Shown here: piece by piece, positions 9,212 through 31,345 of the stretch
How the letters are laid out: the number at the start of each line of letters is the position of its first letter
Position numbering within the stretch: position 1 is the first letter of the stretch
Sequence record: PP968062.1
Strand: one strand, 5' to 3'
Length of the DNA stretch: 64,000 nucleotides
The notes under the pieces: generated by a model
Seen by the model: only the letters and a program-made list of their open reading frames with translations
The model's database searches: none
What the model was told of the DNA's origin: nothing
Position numbers and translations under genes: made by a program

Positions 9212-9230
9212 CTTACTCAGTATGTAATGA

Positions 9231-9385
9231 TATGTAGAGATGTCACTCCTCGTCCCTACATGAACCGCAGCGCGCCGGAGCCAACAACCCTTCCAGTTGG
9301 CTTCTAGGAAGTAAGACTCCCTGTTGCGGTTCCCCTCCTTTCAGTTGGTAAGTTGTATCTTTCTCCTTGTTGTGTTGATGAGCAT
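9231..9385 (+). ncRNA. Candidate structured ncRNA A
   Basis: No ORF; TATG motif upstream, terminator downstream; helices GAACCGCAGC/GTTGCGGTTC, GAGCCAAC/GTTGGCTT, ATGTAG/CTACAT. Confidence 0.55.
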
Positions 9386-9450
9386 ACTGCCTCCCAGTCG
9401 GGAGGCTTTATGTTATATTTATACTTGCTAACATCTTCATATAGAACAAT

Positions 9451-9535
9451 GCCCGGTTGGTGAAATGGTAGTACACAAGAGACTTAAAATCTCTCGGCGA
9501 AAGCCGTGTCGGTTCGAGTCCGACACCGGGTACCA
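9451..9535 (+). tRNA. tRNA-Leu(UAA)
   Basis: Cloverleaf, anticodon arm AGAGA-CTTAAAA-TCTCT, long variable arm, GTTCGAGTC, CCA end. Confidence 0.96.
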
Positions 9536-9593
9536 ATTCAGATATAATGCCTTCCCTTGTGGAAGGTTTTATATTGTCATTAAGAGAGTAAAC

Positions 9594-9821
9594 ATGAATA
9601 CCGTTGCAATGTTAGTACTATCGATCCAAGTTGGTTTCTTTGGATTTACTACAACGAGCGAGTCCAAGATTGAATTCGAGAATAGAAGGCAGTGCATCTC
9701 TCATCTTGATATCCTAGAAAAGAAATACGGTCACCACGAGATCACACGAAATGAATCTACTCTCAAAGTAACAGACCACAGTAATCATGCGATTACCATT
9801 TTTAAATGTCCTACGAGGTGA
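9594..9821 (+). CDS. Small secreted or membrane protein
   Basis: Hydrophobic N-terminus, two Cys, RBS-like GAGAG. Confidence 0.65.
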   Translation: MNTVAMLVLSIQVGFFGFTTTSESKIEFENRRQCISHLDILEKKYGHHEITRNESTLKVTDHSNHAITIFKCPTR

Positions 9822-9825
9822 CGAA

Positions 9826-10113
9826 ATGGAACACCAAGAACAAGTAAGTCTTATTAAGTCTCTCCTGCAATCTGCTTACGATCTAACATTCAATCCTGAA
9901 AAGCGTGGTGGTGCAGTAGGTCCTGATTGGAAGAAGCTAACTGAAGAAGTTGTACTCTTCCCGAATGGATTGGATATTACCATCAATGCGATCACCCGTG
10001 CTATTAAATGGGAACTCATCGATGGACGTGTTGCCAACATCACCTACGTTGAAGCCATGTTCTTTAATAAAGGACTCAAGGCTATCAAAGACTACCTGAA
10101 CGGAACGGAGTAA
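9826..10113 (+). CDS. Hypothetical protein
   Basis: GAGG RBS before ATG; operon packing. Confidence 0.7.
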   Translation: MEHQEQVSLIKSLLQSAYDLTFNPEKRGGAVGPDWKKLTEEVVLFPNGLDITINAITRAIKWELIDGRVANITYVEAMFFNKGLKAIKDYLNGTE

Positions 10114-10117
10114 AACA

Positions 10118-10450
10118 ATGTCTGAACTTGCACCTATCCAACATGAAGTATATACCGCTTTCTGTAGCCCTGCTCTTATGAATAAGACTACCACTGAAGC
10201 GTTCACTCATCTGCACAAACAGTTCCCTCAGATCAAACATTGCGTCAAAAGAAAGACAGGTGAGCACGAGCTACAATTCGTCTTCATCTTCCATGGCGAC
10301 GTGAATGATTTGATTGTCGTGAGAAAGACTACGCCAATGCCTACGCTGAGTAACTTTAATAACGAAGAAGTTGTTCTGAAGGGAGACGCTTTGAAAGAGG
10401 TGCTTGAGAAGGTCGGTCGTGGATCGATATCTCGGACAAAAAGAAAATAG
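10118..10450 (+). CDS. Hypothetical protein
   Basis: GGAG RBS; operon packing. Confidence 0.7.
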   Translation: MSELAPIQHEVYTAFCSPALMNKTTTEAFTHLHKQFPQIKHCVKRKTGEHELQFVFIFHGDVNDLIVVRKTTPMPTLSNFNNEEVVLKGDALKEVLEKVGRGSISRTKRK

Positions 10451-10482
10451 TACTATTTGTGTAATAGTATGTAACACACAAT

Positions 10483-10558
10483 TCCGTGATAGCTCAGCAG
10501 GTAGAGCAGCGCACTGTTAATGCGTTTGTCCCATGTTCGATCCATGGTCGCGGAGCCA
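10483..10558 (+). tRNA. tRNA-Asn(GUU)
   Basis: 76 nt cloverleaf, GCGCA-CTGTTAA-TGCGT, CCA end. Confidence 0.96.
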
Positions 10559-10717
10559 AACGTAAGATCGAGAAGCCCAAAGCTCGATCGAAAGGGACTG
10601 AGAGACTGCGGGTAGCTCAGTATAATCTAACGCCGCCCAATTCAAGAGAGTAGCTTCGGCTACTCTTTTATGCCGTGATGTTATACTCCAATATCGGAGT
10701 TATAGGAGATACTGAAA

Positions 10718-11374
10718 ATGTTGAATAGATCAAAAGGCCTGTTTTTAGATGATAGTAACCTTATGGAAGTTAAGGTTATAAATGCGGTAGGGCATAGAAC
10801 CCATGGTGGTCCTCATATAGAGGATGGATCAAAATATCATAGAACACTTGACTCGTATGAGGTGTTAGCTAAAGGTTATATGTTACGTGAGGGAGTACTG
10901 TCACTAGGTATAAATACATCTGCACACGATATTGAGTATGATGGATTTGGATTTATTAATGTATTTTTAATAGAAGATCCATTACCTCACGTTGAAGCAT
11001 ATAAAGGAAAACATGTTATTCTATCACCTGTACCTAAACAGTTGGCCGATAAAATAATTAAGGATGATAGAAATGTTGGACGATTAACAAATTTAGGAAT
11101 GTTAGATGATTTACTATACCAAATTGATACACGTGTAACTGAAGCATTAATCTATCTAACTGAAAACATGGCACCAGCCAGTCCCGAATATAGGGCAATT
11201 CCACCAGTTCTAACCTTTGACATTTTTGTAGATAATAAATATGTTTCGATATATGCGTTCGAATCAGCTATTAAAGAAAAGTATGGGGATACGATAACAT
11301 TCCGTATTATAGAACCTAATGAACCTCCGACACCAGGAGAGTATTTAAGGATTGAGTTAACTATAACGAAATAG
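10718..11374 (+). CDS. Hypothetical protein in AT-rich island
   Basis: 218 aa ORF, GGAG RBS, visibly more AT-rich than flanks. Confidence 0.7.
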   Translation: MLNRSKGLFLDDSNLMEVKVINAVGHRTHGGPHIEDGSKYHRTLDSYEVLAKGYMLREGVLSLGINTSAHDIEYDGFGFINVFLIEDPLPHVEAYKGKHVILSPVPKQLADKIIKDDRNVGRLTNLGMLDDLLYQIDTRVTEALIYLTENMAPASPEYRAIPPVLTFDIFVDNKYVSIYAFESAIKEKYGDTITFRIIEPNEPPTPGEYLRIELTITK

Positions 11375-11442
11375 CAATATATCCTACAATTTATTCAAAC
11401 AGATTATCTTATGAACTAAATTGTTTACTTGAGAGCACACTC

Positions 11443-13290
11443 ATGTTTGAATTATTGTTATCAGCTGCTGGGCAAGCTAAGCCAGTGGAAATGATACCGT
11501 ATAACCAACCAACATTGTTTGGACAACTGGATGTTGGATTGGTTGGATCGGTACCCTATTTCAGAAATGGTTTATTAAATATTAATAGTGGTGCCCCATC
11601 AAGAAGTACAACTGATAATAACATCAGAATTTTTGATAGCACTGGTACTCAAATCAGTAAAACAGCTGTCCAAAATAGTTATTCACTTTGTCATACGGCG
11701 GGTGTATTTGTTCCAACATCCGATAGACTTTACATGTTCGGTGGGCGTCGTGGCGCTTCTTGGACACAAAACGTCATCACGATGATCAATCCAACTGTAC
11801 CTAATGATAATCTTATTAGTAATCAGTTGATGAATACATCCACTTATAACAGTATCGGCGATTGGGATGGCGGTGAATTTATTTGGGTACTGGAACATGC
11901 AACAGATCTTTTGATTCGCTATAGACTATCGAATAACGTTCGAGAAGTAATGAGTGCCCGGTGCCCTGTTATTCTATCTGGAGCGTATGCATTCTGCCAT
12001 AAAGGGAATTTCTATGTGATGGGTGGATGGAAGAACATCTCTGGCAGTTGGGTTGTTAACCAAGATGTTTATAAATACACCGTTGCTATTAATACATGGA
12101 CATTGTACCATTCATACTCCACAGACTACCACGGTGGTCATCAAGGTGGTAAGTACTGGAACGGGACTTTTAACTACACTATCGTTAAAGATGGTAAGAT
12201 TCATTGTGTTCGTTATTATATCGCCGAAAAACAATTTGTTGTTACTGAGACGAATATTGGTGAGGTCCATGGGACATCAGTCGCATTAAATCCATCGAAT
12301 GGCGATCTGTATCTGATCGGTGGTTCGGACATTGTTATCGATGACGCCCTTTTTAACACCCCTGAAAGAACGAAAGCAGCTATCTATAAATTCACTATTC
12401 CTATCCCTCCAAGTAAAACTGAATGGGAAGTAATGGCAAACGCACCTTATGATAGTCGAGGTTCCACTGCGGTTGTAATAGATGATGAACTGTATATGTT
12501 CGGCGGGTATACAAGTACAGGTGCATATAGAGGCGCGTTTAATAAATATAATCCTGAGACTAATACATGGAACGGTCTATTCACTGGATCTGGTTTAAGT
12601 CCGAGTGCCCGTGCTAATATGTGTGCAGCTGCAAATGATACACATATGTACCTATTCAGTGGATCTAACCAATCAGCAGATTTCTGGCGTTATAACGTAG
12701 CGACCAATGATTGGACGGCTATTACACCCGCTTCTCCGGGTTCATCTAATCCAGTATTTAGAACACAAGCTACGATGGTTCATTATAATGGTAAGCTCTA
12801 TTTGCTTGGTGGGAATAATGAATCTGACGCGTTGTTCGTCTACGATATTGCATCTAACATGTGGTCAAAACGAGTTGCGCAAGGTGGCATCCAACGATCT
12901 TCACATAGAGCGGTTGTTGTCGGCGAGTACATGTATGTCTATGGTGGATTTGTAAATGGTTCGCAATCCGGTCGATTTGATCGAATGAATATGAATACAT
13001 TTGCATGGGAGTCTCTACCGACTACCGATGGTCCCGGTGTTAACAGTTACGGTGTAATGCTGACTAACGATGAAGAAATTATATACATTGGCGGCGCTGA
13101 CGAAGACAAACGTAGAAAAGCCAATGCGTATAATATCCAATCGAGAACTTGGCGTAAACTACCAGAACTACCAAACGGTGTGAATGATGGCTATGGTGGA
13201 TTTATTAATGGCACAGCATATGTTGGCGGTGGTCTAACTGGAGCCAATAATAATACAATTACAGACAAGTTCTATCGTCTTGGAATTTAA
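11443..13290 (+). CDS. Kelch-repeat beta-propeller protein, probably virion-associated
   Basis: Repeated LYMFGG/FYVMGG/LYLIGG/MYVYGG...Y(N/D)...W blades, enough for two propellers. Confidence 0.88.
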   Translation: MFELLLSAAGQAKPVEMIPYNQPTLFGQLDVGLVGSVPYFRNGLLNINSGAPSRSTTDNNIRIFDSTGTQISKTAVQNSYSLCHTAGVFVPTSDRLYMFGGRRGASWTQNVITMINPTVPNDNLISNQLMNTSTYNSIGDWDGGEFIWVLEHATDLLIRYRLSNNVREVMSARCPVILSGAYAFCHKGNFYVMGGWKNISGSWVVNQDVYKYTVAINTWTLYHSYSTDYHGGHQGGKYWNGTFNYTIVKDGKIHCVRYYIAEKQFVVTETNIGEVHGTSVALNPSNGDLYLIGGSDIVIDDALFNTPERTKAAIYKFTIPIPPSKTEWEVMANAPYDSRGSTAVVIDDELYMFGGYTSTGAYRGAFNKYNPETNTWNGLFTGSGLSPSARANMCAAANDTHMYLFSGSNQSADFWRYNVATNDWTAITPASPGSSNPVFRTQATMVHYNGKLYLLGGNNESDALFVYDIASNMWSKRVAQGGIQRSSHRAVVVGEYMYVYGGFVNGSQSGRFDRMNMNTFAWESLPTTDGPGVNSYGVMLTNDEEIIYIGGADEDKRRKANAYNIQSRTWRKLPELPNGVNDGYGGFINGTAYVGGGLTGANNNTITDKFYRLGI

Positions 13291-13334
13291 TAAATACTGG
13301 TATGGTAATACTATGTAAGACTATACCAGATTTC

Positions 13335-13423
13335 GGAGAGATAGGAAAATTGGTAACCCCAGCTGACTGTAAATCAGCCGTCCGTATCGGGCATTACTGG
13401 TTCGAGTCCAGTCCTCTCCACCA
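13335..13423 (+). tRNA. tRNA-Tyr(GUA)
   Basis: GCTGA-CTGTAAA-TCAGC, long variable arm, CCA end. Confidence 0.96.
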
Positions 13424-13485
13424 ATGCGTCATAGTGCTCTCCCTCCGGGGAGAGCTTTATGCCAATTAACACAAAAGGAAATAAC

Positions 13486-14022
13486 ATGTCAGCATTAAGT
13501 TTGATTCAACGATGGGCGCCGGAGGCACCGAGGATTCTCCTCCATGCTAATGACAAGCCCTCCACTACAAAGATGGTTCTCGATAAAGATCACGGGGAAT
13601 ACATGAAGTTTAACGACTTCCTGATCCTCCTTAAGAACGGTATCTTTATTGAAGCTACGAAAGATCTTCATGAAACGCTGCTAGATGGTAGAGCACAACA
13701 AGACCTCATGGCTCGACTGGGTCGTATGGGTTATGAAGACTTCGATCAAGTCATGCGTGTATTGGAAGAACAACGTAGTACTGTTCTCAAAGAGAAAGAG
13801 TATGAAATCTGGCAAGAGGGCCATCAAGCATCTGGTGATTCCAGTAAAGCTCATCTCGTTGGTAAGGCTACAGGTTACTCTTTCCTCGATGCTGTAGACA
13901 ACTACATGAAGACAGCCAGTAAAGATACGAAAGACTGTTTCCGTGCTGAACTGGATGCAGCCTATATCTGGGGTTGCCGTCTGTATGACAATGAAATCGA
14001 TGCACGTAAATCTTTCGGGTGA
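13486..14022 (+). CDS. Conserved phage protein (YEIWQEG...WGCRLYDNEIDARKSFG domain)
   Basis: AAGGA RBS; C-terminal motif I recall from other phage proteins, function unknown. Confidence 0.72.
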   Translation: MSALSLIQRWAPEAPRILLHANDKPSTTKMVLDKDHGEYMKFNDFLILLKNGIFIEATKDLHETLLDGRAQQDLMARLGRMGYEDFDQVMRVLEEQRSTVLKEKEYEIWQEGHQASGDSSKAHLVGKATGYSFLDAVDNYMKTASKDTKDCFRAELDAAYIWGCRLYDNEIDARKSFG

Positions 14023-14025
14023 TCT

Positions 14026-14460
14026 ATGATTCCTAAACTTTCTGTTGCTGATATCCGTAGTAAACAAACTCCTGAACAACTGGCCAATAACCGGGAGAAA
14101 ATCCTGGAAGCAGTCGAGCGTTACCATGCTGCTCAACGAGAGCTTGAAACCTACTGTGAACGTAATGGGTTAGAAGTACCTATCCTAGTCTGTAACTCCA
14201 TGGCAGTTAACAAAGGTATTCCTTCTCGTCTCTCTATGCACGTAATGGTTCAACTCGGTATTGGTGATTATACCAGTCGAATGAACATGAACGCTATCCA
14301 ACTCAGTGATATGATCGAACGTGATCTAACCGATCTTTGGAACAAGCATTATGAGAATGAGTGGATTGATTGGAAACCTTCCGTTAATACATTCCTCTGC
14401 AATGGCCAATATATCATCCAAGTCTTCTTGGGTCGCGAAAAGATCATGGAGTTGAAATGA
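14026..14460 (+). CDS. Hypothetical protein
   Basis: 144 aa, operon packing. Confidence 0.7.
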   Translation: MIPKLSVADIRSKQTPEQLANNREKILEAVERYHAAQRELETYCERNGLEVPILVCNSMAVNKGIPSRLSMHVMVQLGIGDYTSRMNMNAIQLSDMIERDLTDLWNKHYENEWIDWKPSVNTFLCNGQYIIQVFLGREKIMELK

Positions 14461-14606
14461 CTACTGAAGTCAAAAAAGAAAAGCGACATAGAGGGCGACA
14501 AGCCCTCAATGCAGTTGGTGAAATCATCGGTGCTATATTCGAAGGCATCTGGTGGATCCTGACCTGTCCGTTCCGTTTAATCGGTGCACTCTGTACACTC
14601 GATTAA
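14457..14606 (+). CDS. Small membrane protein (49 aa)
   Basis: ATGA overlap with upstream stop; MTTEVKKEKRHRG followed by hydrophobic helix; not in ORF track. Confidence 0.6.
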   Translation: MTTEVKKEKRHRGRQALNAVGEIIGAIFEGIWWILTCPFRLIGALCTLD

Positions 14607-14629
14607 AAAGAATACTTGGTTGGTTACAG

Positions 14630-14870
14630 TATGTAACGAACAAAGTTACTTCATCGAAATGCTGCCCGTTGAAACATCTCACGCTAGGTCCAGCAGACTG
14701 TATCGTTTCGATGTGACCTTTATAGCTCCCGGAAACCAAAGGCTAATTGTGGCAAGCCAATGCTTGAGGGAAGTCGATTGGGCCGACCCTAGAGAAAGGT
14801 GTCTCTTCAGTTCCACTGACTGTACCTAACGAGGGATATCAAGATCAATAAGAGACTGGTTTTGGTATTC
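14630..14870 (+). ncRNA. Candidate structured ncRNA B
   Basis: TATG at 14630, terminator at 14878-14898; helices CATCGAAA/TTTCGATG, TGCTG/CAGCA, GTCG/CGAC, AGAGA/TCTCT, CAGT/ACTG. Confidence 0.5.
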
Positions 14871-14956
14871 GACATACAGCTCTCCGTTAAGGAGAGTTTT
14901 ATGCCGTTTTATACTGGGTACTATAACAGTATGTTAAAGGTCGTAAAGAGGTACAC

Positions 14957-15316
14957 ATGACTACATTCATGCCTAGTCACGCAGAAGCTGATATTGATGT
15001 TGCTTCAAGAAACAAAATGCTGTCTGAACTGCTTATAGAAGAGTTCCCTAATACCGAAGGAATGTCCACCGCAGCAGCTGAAGACTATCTACGTTCTAAG
15101 GTCGTAGATAAATTCAACATTAACCATCCGGAATACACAGCTCACGTTAGTTACGATTGTACAGCTCGTGGCGATTTCATCACAGCTTGGGTAACCCGTA
15201 AGCTCGCCTTAATCAAATTGAAAGTTACATCAGAGGAACCAAAATGTTCGAAAACGCAGAATTCAAAGATGATGGCCTTGGGGCACTCATTACGGAAATT
15301 TTTGGTCGGAACCTGA
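14957..15316 (+). CDS. Hypothetical protein
   Basis: GAGG RBS; 3' end overlaps next gene by 73 nt so the end is uncertain. Confidence 0.65.
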   Translation: MTTFMPSHAEADIDVASRNKMLSELLIEEFPNTEGMSTAAAEDYLRSKVVDKFNINHPEYTAHVSYDCTARGDFITAWVTRKLALIKLKVTSEEPKCSKTQNSKMMALGHSLRKFLVGT

Positions 15317-15459
15317 ACCAGAAGTTCCAAGAATGGTACAGCCCACTGATGGCTGATCCGACTATAGAAAAGGTTCCAGTCTGCCGAGGTGGGCAGGTTG
15401 TTAAAGAACCAGCTAACTTCGTAGCTCTTGTAAAAGAGTGGTTAGCGAATCAAGAATAA
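15244..15459 (+). CDS. Hypothetical protein
   Basis: GAGGA RBS. Confidence 0.7.
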   Translation: MFENAEFKDDGLGALITEIFGRNLNQKFQEWYSPLMADPTIEKVPVCRGGQVVKEPANFVALVKEWLANQE

Positions 15460-15484
15460 GTTTACTGAGAAGTAAACCATATGT

Positions 15485-15553
15485 AAGAGTTAATGTCGGT
15501 GGTATCCCTTAACTTAACGGTCGGATGCGAAAAGTGCATCGGTGTTAACTCTT
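15485..15553 (+). ncRNA. Candidate structured ncRNA C
   Basis: Terminal stem of about 15 bp (AAGAGTTAATGTCGG/TCGGTGTTAACTCTT, with G-U pairs) and inner GATGC/GCATC hairpin; TATG at 15480. Confidence 0.5.
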
Positions 15554-15557
15554 CATT

Positions 15558-15643
15558 GGGAGCATAGGCGAATTGGTATAGCCAGCTGGTTTAGGTCCAG
15601 CCGTCGTAAGACACTGTGGGTTCGAGTCCCTCTGCTCCTACCA
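15558..15643 (+). tRNA. tRNA-Leu(UAG)
   Basis: GCTGG-TTTAGGT-CCAGC, long variable arm, CCA end. Confidence 0.95.
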
Positions 15644-15685
15644 TTTACTAGATTCTTGTGTAATACTATACGAGAATATTCAATG

Positions 15686-15845
15686 ACTCTGCATGTTCTC
15701 CGGGTATATCCCATAATTGCTATTCTACTCCTCCCTTAAAAGGATAGCATTTAAAGGTTGCGATGACTAATCGTAATGCAGGGTGATTAATAGTGCCGAC
15801 TATAGCGAGGGTCGGGTCTACACTTAACTGGTGGATTCCAGTACT
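15686..15845 (+). ncRNA. Candidate structured ncRNA D
   Basis: GTAATACTATACG motif upstream; CTGCAT/ATGCAG encloses three hairpins, followed by CCGAC/GTCGG and ACTGG/CCAGT. Confidence 0.45.
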
Positions 15846-15858
15846 CAATTCAAATTCA

Positions 15859-15887
15859 GCCGTTATAGCTCAGCAGGTAGAGCAACT
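15859..15887 (+). pseudogene. 5' fragment of a canonical tRNA-Thr(UGU)
   Basis: GCCGTTATAGCTCAGCAGGTAGAGCAACT = acceptor 5' strand, D arm and start of anticodon stem (thrU-like); stops 3 nt before the HNH start codon. Confidence 0.8.
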
Positions 15888-15890
15888 AAA

Positions 15891-16298
15891 ATGAGAATAG
15901 ATCTTGATTTTCCGTTTAACCAAGATTGGACTCATGGATATCTTAACAGTCAAACAACAGGTCGTCGGATTGTACATCTCCATGATGGTTCAGGCAAAAC
16001 GAAGACAGTTAGTTATGCAAGATATCTAGTCTCTGTGGAGCTAGAACGTCATCTTGAGAAAGATGAAGAAGTGGATCACGTTGACGATAATTTCGAAAAC
16101 GATAAACTACTTAATCTCCAAATTTTAACACCCCGGCAGAACAGAGCAAAGCAAGGTCCTCTAAATAGAGTAGACGTTGTACATGGTTCTTTAACAGCGT
16201 ACCGTTATTGTAAATGTGATATTTGCAAACTCGGTAAAAGTCTGTGGTCTAAGGGTGACAAAATTGGATACGAAAAAAATCTGGCCAACGTAGCATAG
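15891..16298 (+). CDS. HNH homing endonuclease
   Basis: SYARYL...EEVDHVDDNFENDKLLNLQILTPRQN HNH motif; C-terminal HG...Y..CKCDIC module. Confidence 0.9.
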   Translation: MRIDLDFPFNQDWTHGYLNSQTTGRRIVHLHDGSGKTKTVSYARYLVSVELERHLEKDEEVDHVDDNFENDKLLNLQILTPRQNRAKQGPLNRVDVVHGSLTAYRYCKCDICKLGKSLWSKGDKIGYEKNLANVA

Positions 16299-16370
16299 CG
16301 GTCGACTGCAATGGATTTGTAATCCATCGACTAACGTCCATCGTGAGTTCGAATCTCACCGTTGGCTCCA
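16284..16370 (+). tRNA. tRNA-Thr(UGU) with long variable arm
   Basis: GCCAACG/CGTTGGC acceptor, ATGGA-TTTGTAA-TCCAT, extended variable region, GTTCGAATC, U73-CCA. Confidence 0.88.
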
Positions 16371-16376
16371 GTAATA

Positions 16377-16464
16377 CCCAGTGTGGCAGAGTGGTTTAAT
16401 GCACCAGCGAAAAGCTGGCGACAAGTCCTACGAGTCCATAGGTTCGAATCCTATCACTGGCCCA
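16377..16464 (+). pseudogene. Degenerate tRNA-Ser-like gene
   Basis: Ser-type D arm and variable arm, TTCGAAT loop, but a 5-nt anticodon loop (CCAGC-GAAAA-GCTGG) and a 6-bp acceptor stem. Confidence 0.75.
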
Positions 16465-16465
16465 G

Positions 16466-16601
16466 TTTTTGAAATTAGTTGTAAGATGGTAAGGTACAGC
16501 CCGAATCACATTAAAGGAGCCGCCCGGTGATTCATGATGGGTGCATGGGTACAAGTCGAGTGATAAAACGAGTCGCCTTTCACTCCTGCTAATTTCAAAA
16601 A
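16466..16601 (+). ncRNA. Candidate structured ncRNA E
   Basis: Perfect 13-bp terminal inverted repeat TTTTTGAAATTAG/CTAATTTCAAAAA; inner GAATCAC/GTGATTC and GAGTGA/TCACTC. Confidence 0.55.
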
Positions 16602-16609
16602 GCTATTCA

Positions 16610-16687
16610 GGTTCCATAGTCGAGTTGGTTAAGACGCTTGCCTGTCACGCAAGAGATCGTCGGGTTCGAGTCCCACTGGAATCGCCA
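16610..16687 (+). tRNA. tRNA-Asp(GUC)
   Basis: CTTGC-CTGTCAC-GCAAG, G73-CCA; one extra C bulged in the T stem. Confidence 0.94.
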
Positions 16688-16921
16688 TTCGAAAAGACAA
16701 GTCTATAAAACATTAAATAGACTTAGGTCTATTCCAATTGGAGGAATAGTCTCCAGAGGAACTAAACCTCTCGCCTATCCCTCCTCCTAAATGTGCTCTG
16801 GCAAATGTACTATATAGGTAATAGCTAGCTAAAAGAGTGAGCACAGATACCGTTGTAAAGGTAGCCGAAAGGCTACCTTTATTCCGTCAACTACAAATGT
16901 AATTTACTCAAGGGCTTCACT

Positions 16922-17422
16922 ATGAATGACAATATCGTTAACGCACACATTAACTACATCAATATGTTAATCGAGGATTCTCGTCAGATTAATGCAATCG
17001 CAGTTAATCGTGGACTACTTCGTATTAAACAAGATGCAGTAATGATCCGTGAGCATCAAACCGTAGGATTCCACACGGGTCCTTTGTTGAACCCTGATCA
17101 ATTCATTATTGATTGGTACGTAGCTAATGCAGACTCAACATTGGTGATTCCTTATAGTTCCGAAGATGGAGCTAAAATCACTTTGGAAGTAGCACGACGT
17201 ATGCCAGAAGTAAACCCGCAAAGGAACTTCGGTCATATCCGTTCGCTCTCGGTTCGACCTGCCGACACTATCGAGTTCTCTAGTAAACAAGAACACATCA
17301 AATACGTGATCTTGCAGAATGCTAGCAACGTGTTTACTTATGGTACCATCAAGAAGAAATCATTTTACAATTGGGTTGCTAAATGGTTTGCTAAAGATGT
17401 TTATGTAATTCTCGTTAACTAA
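16922..17422 (+). CDS. Hypothetical protein
   Basis: 166 aa ORF after terminator 16857-16880. Confidence 0.72.
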   Translation: MNDNIVNAHINYINMLIEDSRQINAIAVNRGLLRIKQDAVMIREHQTVGFHTGPLLNPDQFIIDWYVANADSTLVIPYSSEDGAKITLEVARRMPEVNPQRNFGHIRSLSVRPADTIEFSSKQEHIKYVILQNASNVFTYGTIKKKSFYNWVAKWFAKDVYVILVN

Positions 17423-17433
17423 AGGAAAATACA

Positions 17434-17882
17434 ATGTTGAATAAAAAGAAACACGTAACGTATTTCTCGCTATTACTAATGTTAAGGTAATGAGATTTCT
17501 CGTGTAGGGATTGGGTGTCATAACTTCAATCCCTTCTTCCGTGTTGATTATGGTGACAAAACAGTAAACTGGGGAAACAAGTATAGCTAAGACTATAGTT
17601 AGAGCAAAACTGATTACAGAATCTGGTGCCTGGATGTCTTCTGATTGGGGACGTGGTTTCATAGTCAATCGCTTTGTTAGACTGGGTGCTGATATCGTCA
17701 CACCAAATGAATTCGAAACACTGTTAACGGACTTCTCGGTTGGAGATATGTTAGTAGTATGGCCCAATGGCCTGAGAACATCGTACAAGACCGATAGCTT
17801 TGATAAGAACTTTACATATGTGAAGGACGAATACTATCAAACTGATCTGATTCCTCTCTTCTATCTAGGGAGTAAACAGTAA
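17434..17882 (+). pseudogene. Hypothetical gene with about three frameshifts
   Basis: AAGGA RBS and ATG; plausible peptide continues across frames (MLNKKKHVTY|FLAITNVK|GNEISRVG...|IAKTIVRAKL...LGSKQ). Confidence 0.55.
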
Positions 17883-18141
17883 TGGCCTTCGCTTGCTGCA
17901 ATGCAGTTTACATGAACTATATCAATCGCGATGGCGGTACCGATATTGAAGTACTGCGTAAGATATCGGGAATGTAGATGAAGTCGTTCAAAAAGAACGC
18001 ACAGATGACTTAGCGCTATGGCATGCTAAGAAGCATGGTACCGAAGTTGCTAAGACTACGTTTGTATTGATTGGTGGGATAGAGCAAGAGCTCTGTATGT
18101 GTGATTGTCATAAACACGACGGTCATTACGTTTTACATTGA
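17882..18141 (+). pseudogene. Small Cys/His-rich gene with one frameshift
   Basis: MAFACC...EVLRK continues in the -1 frame as DIGNVDE...CMCDCHKHDGHYVLH. Confidence 0.55.
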
Positions 18142-18148
18142 GGTGGAT

Positions 18149-18325
18149 ATGAGTACACTCGTACACAAATACGTAGCATTTACACGTACCTTTAAACTGA
18201 CTGAAATCAAGATGCCTAAAGGCGACCGTATGGTGCGCGCTGGTGGTGGTTTCAATAAAGGTAAGGGGTTCGTTAGGGTTGACCTCGGTGCTGTCGGATA
18301 CCGTATCACACGCCGTGATAACTAA
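18149..18325 (+). CDS. Small basic protein (58 aa)
   Basis: GAGG RBS; followed by terminator. Confidence 0.65.
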   Translation: MSTLVHKYVAFTRTFKLTEIKMPKGDRMVRAGGGFNKGKGFVRVDLGAVGYRITRRDN

Positions 18326-18546
18326 CAACATAAATACCTTCCCTTCGGGGAAGGCTTATGCCGCTATCTTATGATGTTGGTGTCAATCACCGTTTACCAT
18401 AGGGCGAAGTTTTAATTGACTTCACCTATGCCGTTATGACATATAGGAGCACTATCGTGTTTGAGGCCCTATTACCAATCCTAGAAAAAGACCGTCATAT
18501 GGCCTATCCTTGTATACATCGGCATTAAAGAAGATGGGAGTCAATA

Positions 18547-22342: not shown

Positions 22343-22393
22343 ATCACGTTGACGACGTTTAAGCCGTTCTTCAGGGAGGCTACGCATTTGTAT

Positions 22394-23071
22394 TTACCTA
22401 TTTACGATTGGAACTGGTTGAGGTTTGTAGTTGACAGCTATCTTCCTTATCGCCTTACGAACGATCATCTGACGTACTCGATCACTCAGATTGATGTCGC
22501 GAGTGAGTACACCCGACTTAGCATTCCAATGATCGAAGCGACAACCCAGGATAGGGTAATGTGCTTGAGCCATTACCATGCATTCCAGTGGGTTGAATGC
22601 ATCACTAGCCGAAGTGAACACATTGTTCAGATGTTCTACCGCTTCACCACACCCGAAAATGATCGGCTTACGAGCAGGAGTGGAATAGTAGTTACTAAGG
22701 AACATGTCATGCGTCGATTGGAACACATGGAGAACATCGTCTTCATCAATGACAATGTATTCCGCATTGGGTGACAGTAGATGTTGGAAGTTCTTCGCCG
22801 TCTCGGCAATACTGTGGATATCATCACCGGTTTCCAAGAAGTTCAACCAGCAATGTCGATATTCGGTATCTCCCACCATAGTGAAGGCTTTTACTTTACG
22901 ACCCCAGACCTTTGCCTCCCAGTTACTCTCGGATGCAAGATAGATCTTGGAATGATCCAACTCAACGTAGTACGGTTTAGGTTTACCGTTCTCGTCCGTG
23001 ATATCGCTTTGGGTAATCGTAGTGACACGATCCACCAGCAAATCTTTACCATCCCAAACAACAAGCGTCAT
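22394..23071 (-). CDS. HslV/proteasome-beta-like Ntn hydrolase
   Basis: N-terminal Thr (MTLVVWDGKDLLVDR), SKI, MVGD, IFGCG at expected spacing. Confidence 0.6.
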   Translation of the reverse strand: MTLVVWDGKDLLVDRVTTITQSDITDENGKPKPYYVELDHSKIYLASESNWEAKVWGRKVKAFTMVGDTEYRHCWLNFLETGDDIHSIAETAKNFQHLLSPNAEYIVIDEDDVLHVFQSTHDMFLSNYYSTPARKPIIFGCGEAVEHLNNVFTSASDAFNPLECMVMAQAHYPILGCRFDHWNAKSGVLTRDINLSDRVRQMIVRKAIRKIAVNYKPQPVPIVNR

Positions 23072-23130
23072 ATTAAATTTTCCTGTTTTCAGTGCAAGAC
23101 GGAATAAAGCCCGCTCCTATTGGAGCGGGC

Positions 23131-23475
23131 TATTCGTTAGATCACCTCACTGGAAAGCCGGCCAGCTAGGTCGCCGAGGAGGTCAGCAACCAATCCAGTT
23201 AAGGTAACGCCACTCGGGGATACCCCTCTCAATCGGAGGTAGTAGCCGTCGTAACTTCAGATATAAAGACGGCCAAGTCAATATACCTGCTTCGGCTTGA
23301 TCCTTTGGCATGGATCGCTGTTAGTCTCTCCGAACTTATGCGGAGAGAGCCCACTTACACCGAAAGCTCGTGGGAATAAGGTGAGGTCACTGCGGCACCC
23401 TAATATGGCGACGGGGAGCCTTAGGGGAGATGATCCGGGTGACCTCTGTTCTGTTGGGACATTTGTCCTCGTATA
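23131..23475 (-). ncRNA. Candidate large structured ncRNA F (about 340 nt)
   Basis: Intergenic; promoter-like GTAATGATATACG at the 5' end, terminator 23105-23133; at least eight helices. Confidence 0.6.
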
Positions 23476-23497
23476 TCATTACATGCCAGGTATTCTT

Positions 23498-24028
23498 TTA
23501 CGTGAGCTTTACTTCCACGTTGACCGATTCGATTCCCAGGCTGTTACGTTTGGTCCGACCACGGGCCAGCAGATAACGAGACCAGGTTTCACCTTGGACA
23601 CGATCGAACTTGAAGAAAATGTGCTGAGTGATCATCTTGCTCAAATCAGCAATCTCTTTCGAGACCATATCGAAGAACAGGTTCTTGTCCATAACAGAAG
23701 CATCGTAATGCTTGAGCTGGACACGACAGTACTGGGAGTTTACCTCGTCGTAGAACTCGACCTCGGGTTCAGGTTCAAAATAATGGACCTTGTTACCCTT
23801 GAACTCGATACCATGAAGGATGACACCGATGTCGTCGTTATGGAAGAAGCGGTCTTTCACAGCACGGTTGTACTCAACAACCATTTTGTCCAGATGGATG
23901 CCACTTACCACTTCTTTGGTAGTGAAGAGGTAGCGACCATTGGGATCGACATACTGTTCACGTGCCCACAGGCAGCATAGACCGGTCGGAATGATTTCAG
24001 CGGGGATACGTAGATCACTGAGCTGCAT
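23498..24028 (-). CDS. Hypothetical protein
   Basis: AAGGA RBS before MQLSDL. Confidence 0.75.
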   Translation of the reverse strand: MQLSDLRIPAEIIPTGLCCLWAREQYVDPNGRYLFTTKEVVSGIHLDKMVVEYNRAVKDRFFHNDDIGVILHGIEFKGNKVHYFEPEPEVEFYDEVNSQYCRVQLKHYDASVMDKNLFFDMVSKEIADLSKMITQHIFFKFDRVQGETWSRYLLARGRTKRNSLGIESVNVEVKLT

Positions 24029-24482
24029 CGAGTTGTTCCTTCTTTGCATGAATGGATTTGGTGATGATGACGCGTCGTTCTTTTGCTGCATCGGACATTA
24101 TCGTTATTTGTTCTTGCATCTGGGTGAACAACAATAGTTCCAGCATGGTGATCAACATGTGCTCTATCCAGAGACGAACACATATTTTGTTCATGGGGGC
24201 ATCATAACGAAGCGGTTGAACCACTTTAGCCAGAGCTCCGGTAAGAGGGCAGGTGAAGCAGATGTGCAGGTTCTCACTGTCACTATCTTCAGCCCAATGA
24301 ACATCTTCCCCTTCTCCGTGAACCATGTTGGTTACATGAACCACGGGTTGATGCTCAAAGGCTTCCGGACGAGGTGTAACACCTTTCTCAACACACTGGT
24401 CAAGATAGATGTCACGAATTACAGCGGAGAGTTCTGCCGCTTCGAGAGACGGCATAAAAGGAAATTTGAGTGTTACCGACAT
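24015..24482 (-). CDS. Hypothetical protein
   Basis: AGGGA RBS before MSVTLK. Confidence 0.75.
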   Translation of the reverse strand: MSVTLKFPFMPSLEAAELSAVIRDIYLDQCVEKGVTPRPEAFEHQPVVHVTNMVHGEGEDVHWAEDSDSENLHICFTCPLTGALAKVVQPLRYDAPMNKICVRLWIEHMLITMLELLLFTQMQEQITIMSDAAKERRVIITKSIHAKKEQLDAAQ

Positions 24483-24544
24483 TTGTAGGTCCCTATTGTG
24501 AAAGGCAAAATAAACCCCTCCCCCGATCAAGGGGAGGGAGCTCA

Positions 24545-24705
24545 AGGTTGGTGGTGACACGAGTCACAGGGATCAGCCGATTGCGGACCCTTAAAAGTGA
24601 TGGGACTCTAACCCATCGTGTCTAACGTTGGATTTAGCCCAACTTAACCAAATTGTAAAAGAGCTATCATAAAGGATCAGGAAACGCATATGATGGTGCG
24701 TAACC
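24545..24705 (-). ncRNA. Candidate multi-hairpin ncRNA G
   Basis: TTGGT/ACCAA closes four hairpins; terminator 24513-24540 follows. Confidence 0.5.
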
Positions 24706-24710
24706 TTTAA

Positions 24711-25133
24711 CTAAACGATAACCTCGCGCGGAGGTGGTTCAACTTTAGTCCAATCCAAGGTTAGAGGAGTAGCGATCTCTTCCCTCATTTTGAACTCGAC
24801 GATGGTTCGTGGCCCGAAATGTTTAATTCCGAGTACATACCCTTCGATAATGATTTCGTACTGCCGACACAACTTACGAATGTAAAGTTCTATCTCGGTT
24901 TCAGTTCGAGGATCCTCAGGAGCAGGGCGATGCTGATGATCCCAGAATATGCAGAACTCTAGCTTTTGCCAGTTACTGAATTCCGGGTTGTAAGAAAACT
25001 GATGCAGGTGAGCTTGTTCATACTCTTCCCCCACGTAAAACAGCAAACTATCGGTGGGTTCCCTAGTCAACTCACTGAAGTCGACTTTTCGCCCACCACG
25101 GGTGAGATCAACGACAATGAGTTGAGAAGACAT
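24711..25133 (-). CDS. Hypothetical protein
   Basis: Operon packing with 1-nt overlap. Confidence 0.75.
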   Translation of the reverse strand: MSSQLIVVDLTRGGRKVDFSELTREPTDSLLFYVGEEYEQAHLHQFSYNPEFSNWQKLEFCIFWDHQHRPAPEDPRTETEIELYIRKLCRQYEIIIEGYVLGIKHFGPRTIVEFKMREEIATPLTLDWTKVEPPPREVIV

Positions 25134-25834: not shown

Positions 25835-25912
25835 GAACCTATTCCTATTAATTCTTTAAAGTTGATAGAGGCAGTATAAGCACTCACTAGATTATACTAC
25901 CCCAGTACATTT

Positions 25913-26602: not shown

Positions 26603-26679
26603 GTTGGTACTCCTTTTGGGTATTTGGATTTTCTATTTGATTAGGGAAAGCGGTGGGATTTCCCCACCGCCTTATGCCG

Positions 26680-29018: not shown

Positions 29019-29054
29019 TGCATTTTCCTTTTGGTTTAGCTTAACGGCATAAAA

Positions 29055-29090
29055 GTAATATAGACCTCTAAACGGTTAGAATAGAGGTCT
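29055..29090 (-). promoter_or_regulatory. Early promoter (TATATTAC) beside an inverted repeat
   Basis: GTAATATA at 29055-29062; AGACCTCTA/TAGAGGTCT. Confidence 0.7.
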
Positions 29091-29096
29091 ACCTTT

Positions 29097-29309
29097 TTAG
29101 AACTTCAGTTCGTGCTCCCTGGCTTTGAACACCAGGGGACGTGTACGATCCTGAACACTGACCACAAATTGATCAGTACCAGGAATCTGACCGAGCAGGG
29201 TAAGGGGTTCATCCTTCTCTGCGCAGAGATAAGAAGTTCGGCCTTTCAAGGCCGAAGCTTCGATACGTTCATTTGCACGAACAGTAACACGATAGGTCAT
29301 TTTACTCAC
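29097..29309 (-). CDS. Small SH3-like beta protein
   Basis: CAEKDEPLTLLGQIPGTDQFVV pattern. Confidence 0.6.
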   Translation of the reverse strand: MSKMTYRVTVRANERIEASALKGRTSYLCAEKDEPLTLLGQIPGTDQFVVSVQDRTRPLVFKAREHELKF

Positions 29310-29866
29310 TCGAAATCAATTACACGCCAACGATCATACCCACATGCAGCGAGTAGACCGACTCGTTCCATAGCTGGTACGTAACCTGCCAACTTAACTT
29401 GCTGGAGTTCCCCGATATCCATCCCATGATGCAACGATTTCGCAATAGCCGTGTCCGGATACCACTGCGTCAACGGAATCGAGGTATTGTAGGTGTAACC
29501 GCAGAACACATCATAAACGTGATGATGTTCATTAATGAACAGGCAGTTACCCTGTGCGCCATTATCGTGATGGGTTTCTTGGATGAGTGCACGAATCTCA
29601 CTCAGGTGACCAGAGGTGAAGCTATTGTAGAACTGGTCAACGTCGTCGTCCCAAAGCAGATCACGAATACGACGAACCAGAGTATCTTCACCACCAACGA
29701 TGATACACTTGATTTTCTGTTTGCGTTCTTCCTGCGGGGGATGGTAGGTGTTATCATTGTTCTCATGGAAACGAATGACATGGGTATTGAAACCACAGTC
29801 CTTACGCCCAAAGAAAACAACCTGATCCCCGAAAACAGCTTGAGCAAAATGCATTTGACCTTTCAT
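29306..29866 (-). CDS. Hypothetical protein, possibly degenerate Ntn fold
   Basis: Strand/helix pattern like 22394-23071, no N-terminal Thr. Confidence 0.6.
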   Translation of the reverse strand: MKGQMHFAQAVFGDQVVFFGRKDCGFNTHVIRFHENNDNTYHPPQEERKQKIKCIIVGGEDTLVRRIRDLLWDDDVDQFYNSFTSGHLSEIRALIQETHHDNGAQGNCLFINEHHHVYDVFCGYTYNTSIPLTQWYPDTAIAKSLHHGMDIGELQQVKLAGYVPAMERVGLLAACGYDRWRVIDFE

Positions 29867-29868
29867 GA

Positions 29869-30210
29869 TTAATCTTCCAGAATGTGAAGGTTCTCGCCAC
29901 GTTCCAGGAACGGGAGGTACGTTTCGTAGTTGTTGATGACCCACTGACAGGATTCATGCTTCGGGGTATCCCTGAGGAACACGCGCATGAAGGTCAGAAG
30001 ATAGATCAGAGAGGCACGGTTGAAACTCAGACCAGCCTGTTCCCATTCTTCCTTGTATTGGCGGGCCTTATCGATGTGATAATCCAAACCCTCCAATGCA
30101 GCGATGTTAACACCATCGATAGCATTAGCCAAATCCTCGATCATGTACGGGAAAACCAGATCGACGTATTCAGCATGTTCGGTAGCATTTACTTGTTCAA
30201 TGATGTTCAT
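29869..30210 (-). CDS. Hypothetical protein
   Basis: ATGA overlap. Confidence 0.75.
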   Translation of the reverse strand: MNIIEQVNATEHAEYVDLVFPYMIEDLANAIDGVNIAALEGLDYHIDKARQYKEEWEQAGLSFNRASLIYLLTFMRVFLRDTPKHESCQWVINNYETYLPFLERGENLHILED

Positions 30211-30416
30211 ACTTCATTTCCTTGTTTGTAGTAGACAGATTTACGAGAGTTGAGGCAACGCGACATATCGCGGACGGGGAAGAGCCCGTCCGCGTATGCT
30301 GTTACCACCTGTGGTCTTGCCCGAGTGGGAATCTCAGCTACAGCTTTCATGGTTACAGGCAGTACGCCTTTACTGAGAATATCATCGACCAGCGCATTCC
30401 AGGCGGTATTTTTCAT
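30207..30416 (-). CDS. Hypothetical protein
   Basis: Coupled start/stop. Confidence 0.7.
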   Translation of the reverse strand: MKNTAWNALVDDILSKGVLPVTMKAVAEIPTRARPQVVTAYADGLFPVRDMSRCLNSRKSVYYKQGNEV

Positions 30417-31192
30417 TAGCGGTTGACCTGTTCGCGATAGTCACGATCAGCCAGTGCCAACAGAGACCAGGAAGTCGCTACCGGCAGTTCACGGCAATCA
30501 GTAGCTACATGTTCAACGGTGTAACCCGCTACGCGTTCAGCCACGATATCGATCTGCCAATTTGGATCAGTGATCTGCTTGATCGCTTTCGGACGCGCCA
30601 GATCGTACACAATGCCCTGGAAGGTAATACCAATGACGTTAACCTTACCAGCTGCACGCTTAGAGATCTCGACCATGTCGGATTCTTTCAACAGGTGAGT
30701 ACGACGTACGATGTGTTGCAGATAACGACGAGCGCTACGCATGGCGTTATGTTCGCCCATGAAGTAGAACTGGCTGATGAAAATATGCTCGTTGTTATCA
30801 GTACGGATCTGAACCGGACGAGGAAACCCACTACCGATACCCAGGTTCAGAGTGGTCTTTTTGTCCATGGCGTAGAAGTCCACATACTTCTTACGCAGCA
30901 TATAGAGTTCACCAGTGGGAGTCAGATAGATCTTGGTGGCGCTGGAATCATCTACTTCGACTTCATTCAGTTCGCAATAGATACCCAGACCTTGTACAAC
31001 CGATTGTGCTTGTAGTAGCCGTTCTTCAGTGAGGCGTTTCGAATAGGTCACCAGTGTATCTGCGATTACACCAACAAGCAGGTTCTCACCATTGCAGGGA
31101 ATGATCTCCATACCGATCAGTTCTACAAGCTCTAGAGCCAGCTTTACTTTCTCCGCATCATAGCGGTCATAAATACCAATGAACTTAGCCAT
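30416..31192 (-). CDS. Hypothetical protein
   Basis: 258 aa, GAGGA RBS. Confidence 0.8.
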   Translation of the reverse strand: MAKFIGIYDRYDAEKVKLALELVELIGMEIIPCNGENLLVGVIADTLVTYSKRLTEERLLQAQSVVQGLGIYCELNEVEVDDSSATKIYLTPTGELYMLRKKYVDFYAMDKKTTLNLGIGSGFPRPVQIRTDNNEHIFISQFYFMGEHNAMRSARRYLQHIVRRTHLLKESDMVEISKRAAGKVNVIGITFQGIVYDLARPKAIKQITDPNWQIDIVAERVAGYTVEHVATDCRELPVATSWSLLALADRDYREQVNR

Positions 31193-31254
31193 TTCTCATT
31201 TTCCTCTTTTGGTTGAAGTAATTACATACAACAGGGTTTGGGAGTATATTCTTA

Positions 31255-31345
31255 CTCGGTACAGCTACTCTTGAGGTAGCTGAGATCCGAGGAACAATAA
31301 TGCTCGATTGTATCGGGAGTTTAATACTCATTTCGGATGTACCTA
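31255..31345 (-). ncRNA. Candidate multibranch RNA or structured leader H
   Basis: GGTACA/TGTACC closes AGCTAC/GTAGCT and ATCCGA/TCGGAT arms with inner hairpins. Confidence 0.45.

Follow-up and report, generated by a model that had tools for sequence, protein, structure and literature searches.

The ten stretches considered here, which lie among the tRNA genes of a jumbo phage and further downstream, are probably not one anti-ribosome toolkit. They seem to combine about five conserved non-coding RNA (ncRNA) genes and a single small protein gene with phage promoters and terminators and with leaders and spacers of tRNAs. The analysed window comprises bases 1-64000 of the Pseudomonas jumbo phage HPP-Temi (Pawinskivirus, phiKZ-related), and the region holding the segments is syntenic with PHIKZ293-304 of phiKZ. 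An initial annotation had described these stretches as a suite of about ten structured, ORF-free ncRNAs united by a common promoter motif and by exposed loops complementary to the Shine-Dalgarno (SD) sequence. All ten segments (A to J) were found where they had been placed (Table 1), and several genuine ncRNA genes seem to be present in the region, but they probably do not constitute one suite. A search of public reads for this phage and its close relatives returned DNA runs only, and the starts, ends and RNA species given for HPP-Temi are all predicted from sequence. A, H, F, C and probably I would be independent conserved ncRNA genes; of the remainder, D would be a tRNA leader, B a trailer, E an insertion in a leader, G a trailer common to PA1C and J a protein gene. 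Phage promoter and terminator elements would partly explain both why a motif is shared and why the segments look rich in C.

Table 1. Predicted features of the segment region in HPP-Temi (positions in the window).
Feature	Position	Strand	Basis
Promoter of RNA A, TACT-N7-TAAT-N2-TATG, predicted start G9234	9214..9234	+	Pattern match; conserved through to phiKZ
RNA A, ~179 nt: three predicted hairpins within a closing stem, C/U-rich linker, terminator	9234..9412	+	Synteny, homology, covariation
phiKZ-type intrinsic terminator of A: C-rich 5' arm, then UUUAUG	9389..9412	+	Sequence
Same-class promoter before tRNA-Asn	10451..10471	+	Pattern match
B: putative 3' trailer of tRNA-Asn ending in terminator; first ~76 nt HPP-Temi-specific, with a tRNA-5'-half-like word	10559..10673	+	Sequence comparison
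Same-class promoter before tRNA-Tyr	13295..13315	+	Pattern match; conserved in relatives
C: candidate non-coding unit, ~271 nt, TATG promoter to terminator	14633..14903	+	Only in Pawinskivirus
D: putative 75-nt hairpin leader of tRNA-Leu(UAG), HPP-Temi-specific	15483..15557	+	No match in relatives
E: promoter GTAATACTATA (predicted start A15670) and ~145-nt HPP-Temi-specific insertion	15660..15861	+	Sequence comparison
F: predicted outer stem and two hairpins with near-invariant 16-17-nt loops; after a tRNA 3' CCA, before tRNA-Asp	16465..16609	+	Covariance model, covariation
G: structured 3' trailer after tRNA-Asp ending in terminator	16688..16886	+	Common to HPP-Temi and PA1C only
H: putative structured RNA, ~372 nt, promoter GTAATGATATA (predicted start A23472), terminator	23101..23472	-	Conserved in Pawinskivirus and PhiPA3
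I: conserved non-coding stretch, ~183 nt, strong terminator at end	24505..24687	-	1-nt indels, 1 compensatory pair
J: CDS0057, small protein gene, 48 aa	31185..31331	-	Substitution pattern

The proposal that a shared promoter motif precedes both ncRNAs and tRNA genes was borne out. GTAATNNTATR occurs five times in the window against 0.89 expected, a number reached in none of 100 shuffles, and all five sites are intergenic and in the sense orientation; they precede A, tRNA-Asn, tRNA-Tyr, E and H. In phiKZ, PA1C, BRkr, Psa21 and D6, as in HPP-Temi, the motif is found ahead of both tRNAs and ncRNAs. It is a subclass of the promoter type already known for the phage, and its CAGTATG form also stands upstream of protein-coding CDS0023 (TATG at 14929). 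The promoters of the phiKZ non-virion RNA polymerase comprise a late class, TATG with G as +1, and a middle class with the element AAanTTACc (Yakunina et al. 2015, PMC4666361). Like these, the intergenic, sense-oriented sites of HPP-Temi have TAT(G/A) at the predicted 5' end and a TTAC/TACT-like element upstream. They would be read by the phage polymerase as promoters of the phiKZ middle/late type, composed of an (A/T)TAC(T/C) element followed by TAAT-N2-TAT(G/A), whose final base would be the first one transcribed. Unlike the phiKZ promoters in PMC4666361 and PMC10914365, where an RNA-gene subclass is not described, the extended form of HPP-Temi stands almost exclusively before genes for tRNAs and ncRNAs: the strict bipartite pattern TACT-N6-8-TAAT-N2-TATR has three matches in 302 kb, all of them in the tRNA/ncRNA region. 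Near 92.8 kb of the HPP-Temi genome this promoter recurs with a sixth unit, which contains no ORF, and the promoter subclass is a possible sequence-only handle for finding more phage RNA genes.

The C-rich words had been proposed to be more frequent than background, and so they are: CTCC occurs 23 times in the 2247 nt of the segments, where shuffles give 9.9 +/- 2.9 and the rate of the whole window predicts about 7. This count is to be read with the facts that the segments were partly chosen for their C-richness and that at least five matches are terminator stems. Many of these words are terminator arms or paired strands. In the window, phiKZ-type terminators, hairpins that have a C-rich 5' arm and are followed by UUUAU, close most units; in this arm and in the TTAT that follows the hairpin they resemble the phiKZ terminator motif described in PMC10914365. 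As CTCC is still enriched with the terminators discounted, there may be some weak, shared pressure towards single-stranded C-rich sequence. Regarding the six C-rich motifs said to be exposed, the three in A and the one in E are predicted to be unpaired, but that of F is paired and that of G mostly paired. No exposed C-rich motif was found in B, C, D, I or J, and the one exposed in H is unconserved in its relatives. Loops that are at once exposed (P 0.64-0.92 for the three motifs) and conserved were found in A only, and the idea of a suite united by anti-SD loops is not supported.

Folding energies, expressed as z-scores relative to dinucleotide shuffles, also separated the segments. A (z -3.4, and -3.6 in another run), D (-2.9), G (-5.3), H (-4.7) and J (-3.6) folded clearly better than their shuffles and E (-2.3) and F (-1.9) modestly so, whereas B (-0.9), C (0.0) and I (-1.2, compared with -2.3 for the intact segment) were at chance level once the terminator was removed. 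A scan with Rfam 15 at the gathering score returned tRNAs only, and permissive E-values over 9000-18600 and 22900-24800, F alone and a GC-rich F homolog gave no credible non-tRNA match.

Segment A appears to be the ortholog of a 141-nt intergenic small RNA of phiKZ located upstream of PHIKZ302 (transcription unit TU237, terminator T131), which originates from early termination and was validated by northern blot (Putzeys et al. 2024, PMC10914365). As in phiKZ, the gp303 homolog precedes A, which opens the tRNA region. It shows 72-79% identity over about 110 nt with phiKZ-like phages and PhiPA3; its alignment with the phiKZ spacer includes both the start and the terminator, and predicts a phiKZ RNA of 140 nt, compared with the published 141. 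The structure is supported by 90.9% of cells being paired and by 10 pairs changed on both sides, where shuffles show 4.3 +/- 1.6 and slid controls 0-3. A shares with the phiKZ RNA the TATG start, the terminator, three hairpins with compensatory changes and an invariant CCCUUCCA loop; it differs in that the Pawinskivirus version adds about 44 nt, partly common to PhiPA3, which carry CCCCUCCUU and UUCUCCUU, and in that it is followed by tRNA-Leu, not by a PHIKZ302 homolog. Only A carries conserved single-stranded C/U-rich elements, which would serve pairing or protein binding, and we infer that it is most likely a base-pairing or protein-binding small RNA acting through them. That a validated phiKZ small RNA, with its invariant C/U-rich loops, is conserved in three genera or more provides a concrete structure and mutants to test.

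Segment F seems to represent a structured RNA family absent from Rfam. A covariance model built here (R1) matches positions 16466-16603 at 148.9 bits and recovered 12 further instances at 101-171 bits; since the 14-base scans of the viral collection gave mostly chance matches, the search relied solely on the joint pattern together with the covariance model. F has the outer stem, the two hairpins with near-invariant loops and the invariant joining strands of the family, with 12 pairs changed on both sides compared with 5.5, and 97.5% of cells paired. Its putative anti-SD word is the 3' strand of a covarying helix. Members sit in the tRNA arrays of several jumbo phages; the family spans jumbo phages of both Pseudomonas and Erwinia and extends to small phage contigs, where it lies away from tRNAs, between HNH and terminase genes. 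F was not found in phiKZ, PhiPA3 or PA1C. We dropped a reading of F as an HNH-associated RNA, since BLASTP found no relationship (E 1.4) between the HNH genes that neighbour it in HPP-Temi and those in a 36-kb viral contig. F would be a compact three-helix RNA of the tRNA operon, and, given this location, tRNA-processing enzymes would probably cut it out and release it as a stable RNA. Its presence in the tRNA arrays of unrelated jumbo phages adds to its interest.

H, without a match in Rfam, is likewise best described as a structured ncRNA gene shared with PhiPA3, with 18 compensatory pairs between the two phages. F and H would add at least two structured RNA families absent from Rfam to the same region. 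C and I were found only in Pawinskivirus, where the divergence available is small: C has no ORF common to relatives, 1-nt indels and 3 compensatory pairs, and I is either a unit of its own starting from a TATG or the 3' UTR of CDS0046, and may be only the latter.

B, D and E all sit where HPP-Temi departs from its relatives, and judging from these comparisons they appear to be HPP-Temi-specific leader or trailer pieces at mosaic (recombination) junctions. The promoter of E drives tRNA-Thr in relatives; in HPP-Temi it is followed by the insertion, which has no relatives and whose hairpin loop exposes CUCCUCCC, and E then reads into a truncated 5' piece of tRNA-Thr and an HNH gene. These orphan segments could nevertheless be functional RNAs beyond the reach of blastn. 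The CCCUCCUCC of G is largely paired with an internal GGAGG. J, claimed to be an ncRNA, is a small protein gene: in comparison with PA1C and phiLBG22, two near-identical relatives, 9 of its 12 substitutions are synonymous and 8 of the 12 hit the third codon position. At 31228, J contains a TATGTAAT promoter that would serve the next gene.

According to one alternative, none of the segments has a function, and tRNA precursor transcripts simply contain them as spacers, leaders and decayed remnants of tRNAs or genes. B, D and most of E fit such an origin, as they have no relatives in the whole phage collection and are placed exactly at HPP-Temi-specific differences; so do the tRNA-like word in B, the truncated tRNA-Thr at 15862 and the chance-level folding of C and I without their terminators. 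As an account of every segment we consider it improbable, because A has been kept across three genera with compensatory changes and its phiKZ version is seen on northern blots, F combines near-invariant loops with stems that covary among jumbo phages of Pseudomonas and Erwinia and small phage contigs, and H has its compensatory pairs with PhiPA3. That several segments encode small proteins, as annotated in the GenBank record, is very unlikely. J does have a coding pattern and is the exception to the ORF-free character attributed to the segments, and ORFs of 30-56 aa are annotated in A, C, F, G, H and I. However, these short ORFs are unconserved: that of C needs a 1-nt insertion unique to HPP-Temi, with no frame common to relatives, I is interrupted by 1-nt indels and H by many indels, including non-triplet ones, and paired columns covary in A, F and H. 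Several small ORFs of the GenBank record are spurious, as this analysis flags, and one gene is probably annotated on the wrong strand. Nothing resembling human sequence was encountered, nor any toxin gene or alternative genetic code.

The reading first proposed, in which about ten RNAs form a toolkit for translation takeover whose exposed C-rich loops pair with SD sequences or serve to decoy host nucleases, seems to us quite doubtful. In support of it, A has three predicted single-stranded C/U-rich elements, its first hairpin loop is likewise rich in C and U in PhiPA3, PA7 and phiKZ while the second keeps its invariant word, E exposes a motif in a loop, and CTCC is in excess. Nevertheless, the motifs of F and G are tied up in helices of their own RNAs, the exposed word of H is unconserved, B, C, D, I and the 92.8-kb RNA have no such motif, and J is coding. 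Moreover, an SD-like word is found at -18..-4 in 68% of the phage genes in the window (background, 11%), so that a general anti-SD sponge would also strike the phage's own mRNAs, and the complement of A's invariant loop word (TGGAAGGG) is no commoner in phage genomes than a control word. Another proposal, also rather unlikely, is that phiKZ-like phages possess a set of stable-RNA genes marked by TACT-N6-8-TAAT-N2-TATR (the tRNAs, A, H, the 92.8-kb RNA, and F within the tRNA operon), in which A would act in trans via three or four single-stranded C/U-rich elements on purine-rich GGAG-type sequences. These would belong to ribosome-binding sites or to the G-rich 3' arms of the phage's own terminators, and the outcome would be retuned translation or read-through in infected cells.

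To our knowledge, the ncRNAs of nucleus-forming jumbo phages have barely been studied; in phiKZ there are 17 candidates, of which a few are validated and none has a known function. One phiKZ ncRNA, between PHIKZ298 and PHIKZ297, comes from the same, syntenic tRNA region as the segments of HPP-Temi (Gerovac et al. 2021, PMC8545117). No homolog of it was found in the HPP-Temi window, and only its flank is shared with PA1C. In phage T4, RNAC and RNAD lie in the tRNA gene cluster. Both are stable RNAs whose function is not known (PMC9697503). F recalls them by its place in a tRNA operon, directly after a CCA end and before the next tRNA; unlike them, F also occurs outside a tRNA context. As for A, the staphylococcal RNAIII and Rsa-type sRNAs use C-rich loops to pair with ribosome-binding sites. 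The host of HPP-Temi is Gram-negative, there is no homology with those RNAs, the feature is absent in conserved form from the other HPP-Temi segments, and the loops of A resemble the 5' arms of the phage's own terminators as much as they do the 16S 3' end; yet A, like RNAIII and its kind, exposes C/U-rich words in its hairpin loops and linker.

The sequence of the window is exactly that of bases 1-64000 in the genome of Pseudomonas phage HPP-Temi (PP968062.1, 302,719 bp), a PA1C-like relative of phiKZ belonging to the genus Pawinskivirus. Seven tRNA genes lie within 9.2-17 kb, in a stretch syntenic with the phiKZ tRNA region PHIKZ293-304, and from about 21.7 kb on the gene orientation is that of the minus strand. 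The initial annotation had read ten ORF-free, inverted-repeat-rich segments (A to J) as one coherent suite of ncRNAs with a shared promoter motif and anti-Shine-Dalgarno-like loops. As a single suite this was not borne out; the observation was confirmed in part, and the interpretation drawn from it is partly supported. Our data suggest instead an RNA gene cluster, all of whose transcripts are predicted, under a subclass of phiKZ-type promoters. Its members are A, orthologous to a phiKZ small RNA, F and H, which represent two RNA families that Rfam does not contain, and C and I, two non-coding units specific to the lineage; the other segments are leaders and trailers, plus a gene for a small protein (J).

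Coordinates of the ten segments in the window, with predicted boundaries
Segment	Start in initial annotation	Predicted extent	Strand	Length	Predicted boundaries or context
A	9231	G9234 to ~9412		179 nt	TATG start to terminator
B	10560				
C	14630	14633-14903			TATG promoter and terminator; non-coding unit
D	15485				
E	15686				
F	16466	16465-16609			After tRNA CCA end, ahead of tRNA-Asp
G	16690				
H	23131	A23472 to ~23101	minus	~372 nt	Starts at GTAATGATATA, ends in terminator
I	24545	~24687-24505	minus		Strong terminator at end
J	31255				

The motif said to precede both the ncRNA segments and the tRNA genes proved genuine. Where 0.89 copies of GTAATNNTATR would be expected, the window has five, a count that none of 100 shuffles reached. 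Each copy is intergenic and reads in the sense direction, upstream of A, tRNA-Asn, tRNA-Tyr, E and H; the one at E is the driver of tRNA-Thr in the relatives. A second element, (A/T)TAC(T/C), is located upstream of this motif. The defining element of phiKZ late promoters is TATG, with the start at its G, and phiKZ middle promoters carry AAanTTACc farther upstream, with TATG in some of them too (PMC4666361). From these rules we therefore identify the motif as a phiKZ-type phage-polymerase promoter, and its identity as an ncRNA-specific signal was rejected. The tRNA genes of phiKZ, PA1C, BRkr, Psa21 and D6 are also preceded by it. The strict form TACT-N6-8-TAAT-N2-TATR has only three sites in the whole 302-kb genome, every one in this region, and a looser pattern of the extended promoter gave 10 sites versus 4 for a control word. 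Judged from sequence, the extended promoter appears to be nearly restricted to RNA genes, an observation of our own rather than a published rule. The plainer form CAGTATG (TATG at 14929) stands ahead of the protein gene CDS0023 as its predicted driver, and TATGTAAT at 31228 is the predicted promoter of the gene after J. Outside the window, on the minus strand at ~92,600-92,850 of the HPP-Temi genome, a further ORF-free unit of ~190 nt has the same promoter (ATAC...GTAATGATATA, near 92.8 kb) at its start and a GC-rich terminator at its end; it lacks C-rich words and matched nothing in Rfam.

Segment A is orthologous to a small RNA described in phiKZ. All six Pawinskivirus relatives have it at 90-92% conservation, PhiPA3 and the phiKZ group share its first ~110 nt at 72-79%, and it aligns with the PHIKZ303-PHIKZ302 spacer. 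The TATG-to-terminator span of the phiKZ counterpart is 140 nt, matching the 141-nt small transcript upstream of PHIKZ302 that Putzeys et al. detected with ONT-cappable-seq and validated on a northern blot (PMC10914365), which ties A to this RNA. Its fold consists of a closing stem around three hairpins, followed by a linker and the terminator (z -3.6, the folding energy relative to dinucleotide shuffles, where negative values are better than chance). In the alignment 90.9% of 296 cells are paired, and both partners were substituted in 10 pairs, where shuffles gave 4.3 +/- 1.6 and slid controls 0-3. The first hairpin loop is C/U-rich across every genus, CCCUUCCA is invariant in the second, and the linker gains CCCCUCCUU and UUCUCCUU in Pawinskivirus, the latter also being found in PhiPA3.

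Segment H is 90-92% conserved in Pawinskivirus, and PhiPA3 has a counterpart with 78% identity over the 5' part, which there too fills a gene-free gap (416 nt). Its consensus fold has 116 pairs, 18 of them with compensatory changes (z -4.7), and no Rfam match was found. The plus-strand CDS0043 (23405-23980) overlaps the H promoter; in its place the relatives have a minus-strand gene of 177 aa, matched in HPP-Temi by a minus-strand ORF at 23498-24091, ending at 23498, and CDS0043 is probably annotated on the wrong strand. Segment C, ~271 nt long and 86-88% conserved, was found only in Pawinskivirus. The 56-aa ORF annotated in it exists only by virtue of a 1-nt insertion that HPP-Temi alone carries, and the relatives have no reading frame in common. 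It has three compensatory pairs, and its folding is not above that of shuffles (z -1.2, and 0.0 without the terminator). Segment I (~183 nt) is 90-91% conserved, with 1-nt indels and one compensatory pair, and may be its own transcription unit or the 3' UTR of CDS0046.

The remaining segments are of other kinds. D is a 75-nt leader hairpin upstream of tRNA-Leu(UAG), the first 76 nt of B are part of the tRNA-Asn trailer, and the E core (~145 nt) is inserted at the tRNA-Thr leader position of the relatives; these three sequences had zero matches among 50,697 phage records, and all lie at sites where HPP-Temi departs from its relatives through gene loss or replacement. From E, one predicted unit of ~1.2 kb reads through a truncated 5' piece of tRNA-Thr, an HNH gene, a new tRNA-Thr, an odd type-II tRNA, F, tRNA-Asp and G, with a terminator near 16886. 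G has a counterpart in PA1C only and folds well (z -5.3). J, proposed as an ncRNA, shows a coding pattern instead: in the CDS0057 frame (48 aa), 9 of 12 substitutions relative to PA1C and phiLBG22 are synonymous and 8 of 12 fall at codon position 3, which identifies J as coding.

Whether the segments expose C-rich words able to mask ribosome-binding sites has a different answer for each of them. In A this was borne out, as the three motifs originally quoted are all predicted to be unpaired (P 0.64-0.92), and CUCCUCCC is predicted to lie exposed in a loop of E, a segment that has no relatives. By contrast, CCCUCCUCC in G is mostly paired with an internal GGAGG, TCACTCCT in F makes up the 3' side of hairpin 2, covaries (e.g. 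UCUCC in Psa21) and therefore forms no exposed loop, the exposed CCUCC of H is replaced in the relatives, and neither C nor I has any such exposed word. CTCC itself is above background in the ten segments (23 occurrences, where dinucleotide shuffles gave 9.9 +/- 2.9 and the rate for the window predicts ~7); these segments had been picked in part for their C-rich character. At the end of most units is a hairpin whose 5' arm is C-rich and after which comes UUUAU, matching the conserved phiKZ terminator motif (PMC10914365); such stems account for at least 5 of the 23 matches and explain part of the C-rich signal. A role as a general anti-Shine-Dalgarno sponge is unlikely, because it would act on the mRNAs of the phage as well: 65 of the 95 phage genes of the window carry an SD-like word at -18 to -4, versus a background of 11%. 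The loops of A resemble the C-rich 5' arms of the phage's terminators as much as the 16S 3' end, and the complement of its invariant loop word is not enriched in the phage genomes. Candidate modes for A are pairing with GGAG-type sequences (ribosome-binding sites or terminator 3' arms) and protein binding.

The tRNA region (9000-17000) is strongly mosaic with respect to the relatives. HPP-Temi lacks tRNA-Pro, tRNA-Met and two virion-protein genes (~939 and 1569 bp) present in them, and has a cassette of HNH gene, odd tRNA and F whose best matches are P. syringae phages. At 15862-16370, a ~32-nt 5' fragment matching the start of the relatives' tRNA-Thr is interrupted by the HNH endonuclease ORF (15891-16298), downstream of which is an intact tRNA-Thr(UGU) (16284-16370); this looks like a homing-endonuclease cassette carrying its own replacement tRNA. 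The tRNA at 16377-16463, called tRNA-Phe with anticodon AAA by ARAGORN, is of type II (long variable arm), has an unusual anticodon loop with G at position 33, scores only 39.8 bits with the Rfam tRNA model and may derive from a tRNA-Ser-like gene. The annotated starts of two genes look wrong: that of CDS0018 (13459) is an ATG within the UUUAUG tail of the tRNA-Tyr terminator (13456-13461), and CDS0013 (9465-9821) overlaps tRNA-Leu (9451-9535).

Segment F is a member of an RNA family that has no match in Rfam. No counterpart was found in the Pawinskivirus relatives, phiKZ or PhiPA3, and its core is ~85% identical in the P. syringae phages Psa21 and D6 and in Erwinia phage pEa_SNUABM_9, where the element lies 3' of a tRNA-Ser. 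The covariance model that we built recovered 13 instances (101-171 bits), the window copy included; ten are in jumbo-phage tRNA arrays, directly 3' of a tRNA CCA end, and three are GC-rich copies outside tRNA arrays, on phage-like contigs of smaller size. The latter three (L084:1030-1167, L137:2542-2679 and L247:4543-4666) come from 36-kb and 49-kb viral contigs and a Xylophilus MAG contig, the L084 copy being flanked by an HNH endonuclease gene and by small and large terminase genes. The structure combines an outer stem, two hairpins with loops of 16-17 nt that hardly vary, and invariant joining strands; 97.5% of the alignment cells are paired, and 12 pairs changed on both sides versus 5.5 +/- 1.6. 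Its two halves resemble the products of a tandem duplication, and the copy in a 317-kb viral contig (L019:10443-10607) has an additional 27-nt hairpin between them, a tolerance of insertion typical of structured RNA. Release of F from the tRNA operon would probably be carried out by tRNA-processing enzymes, in the manner of RNAC and RNAD, stable RNAs located in the T4 tRNA cluster.
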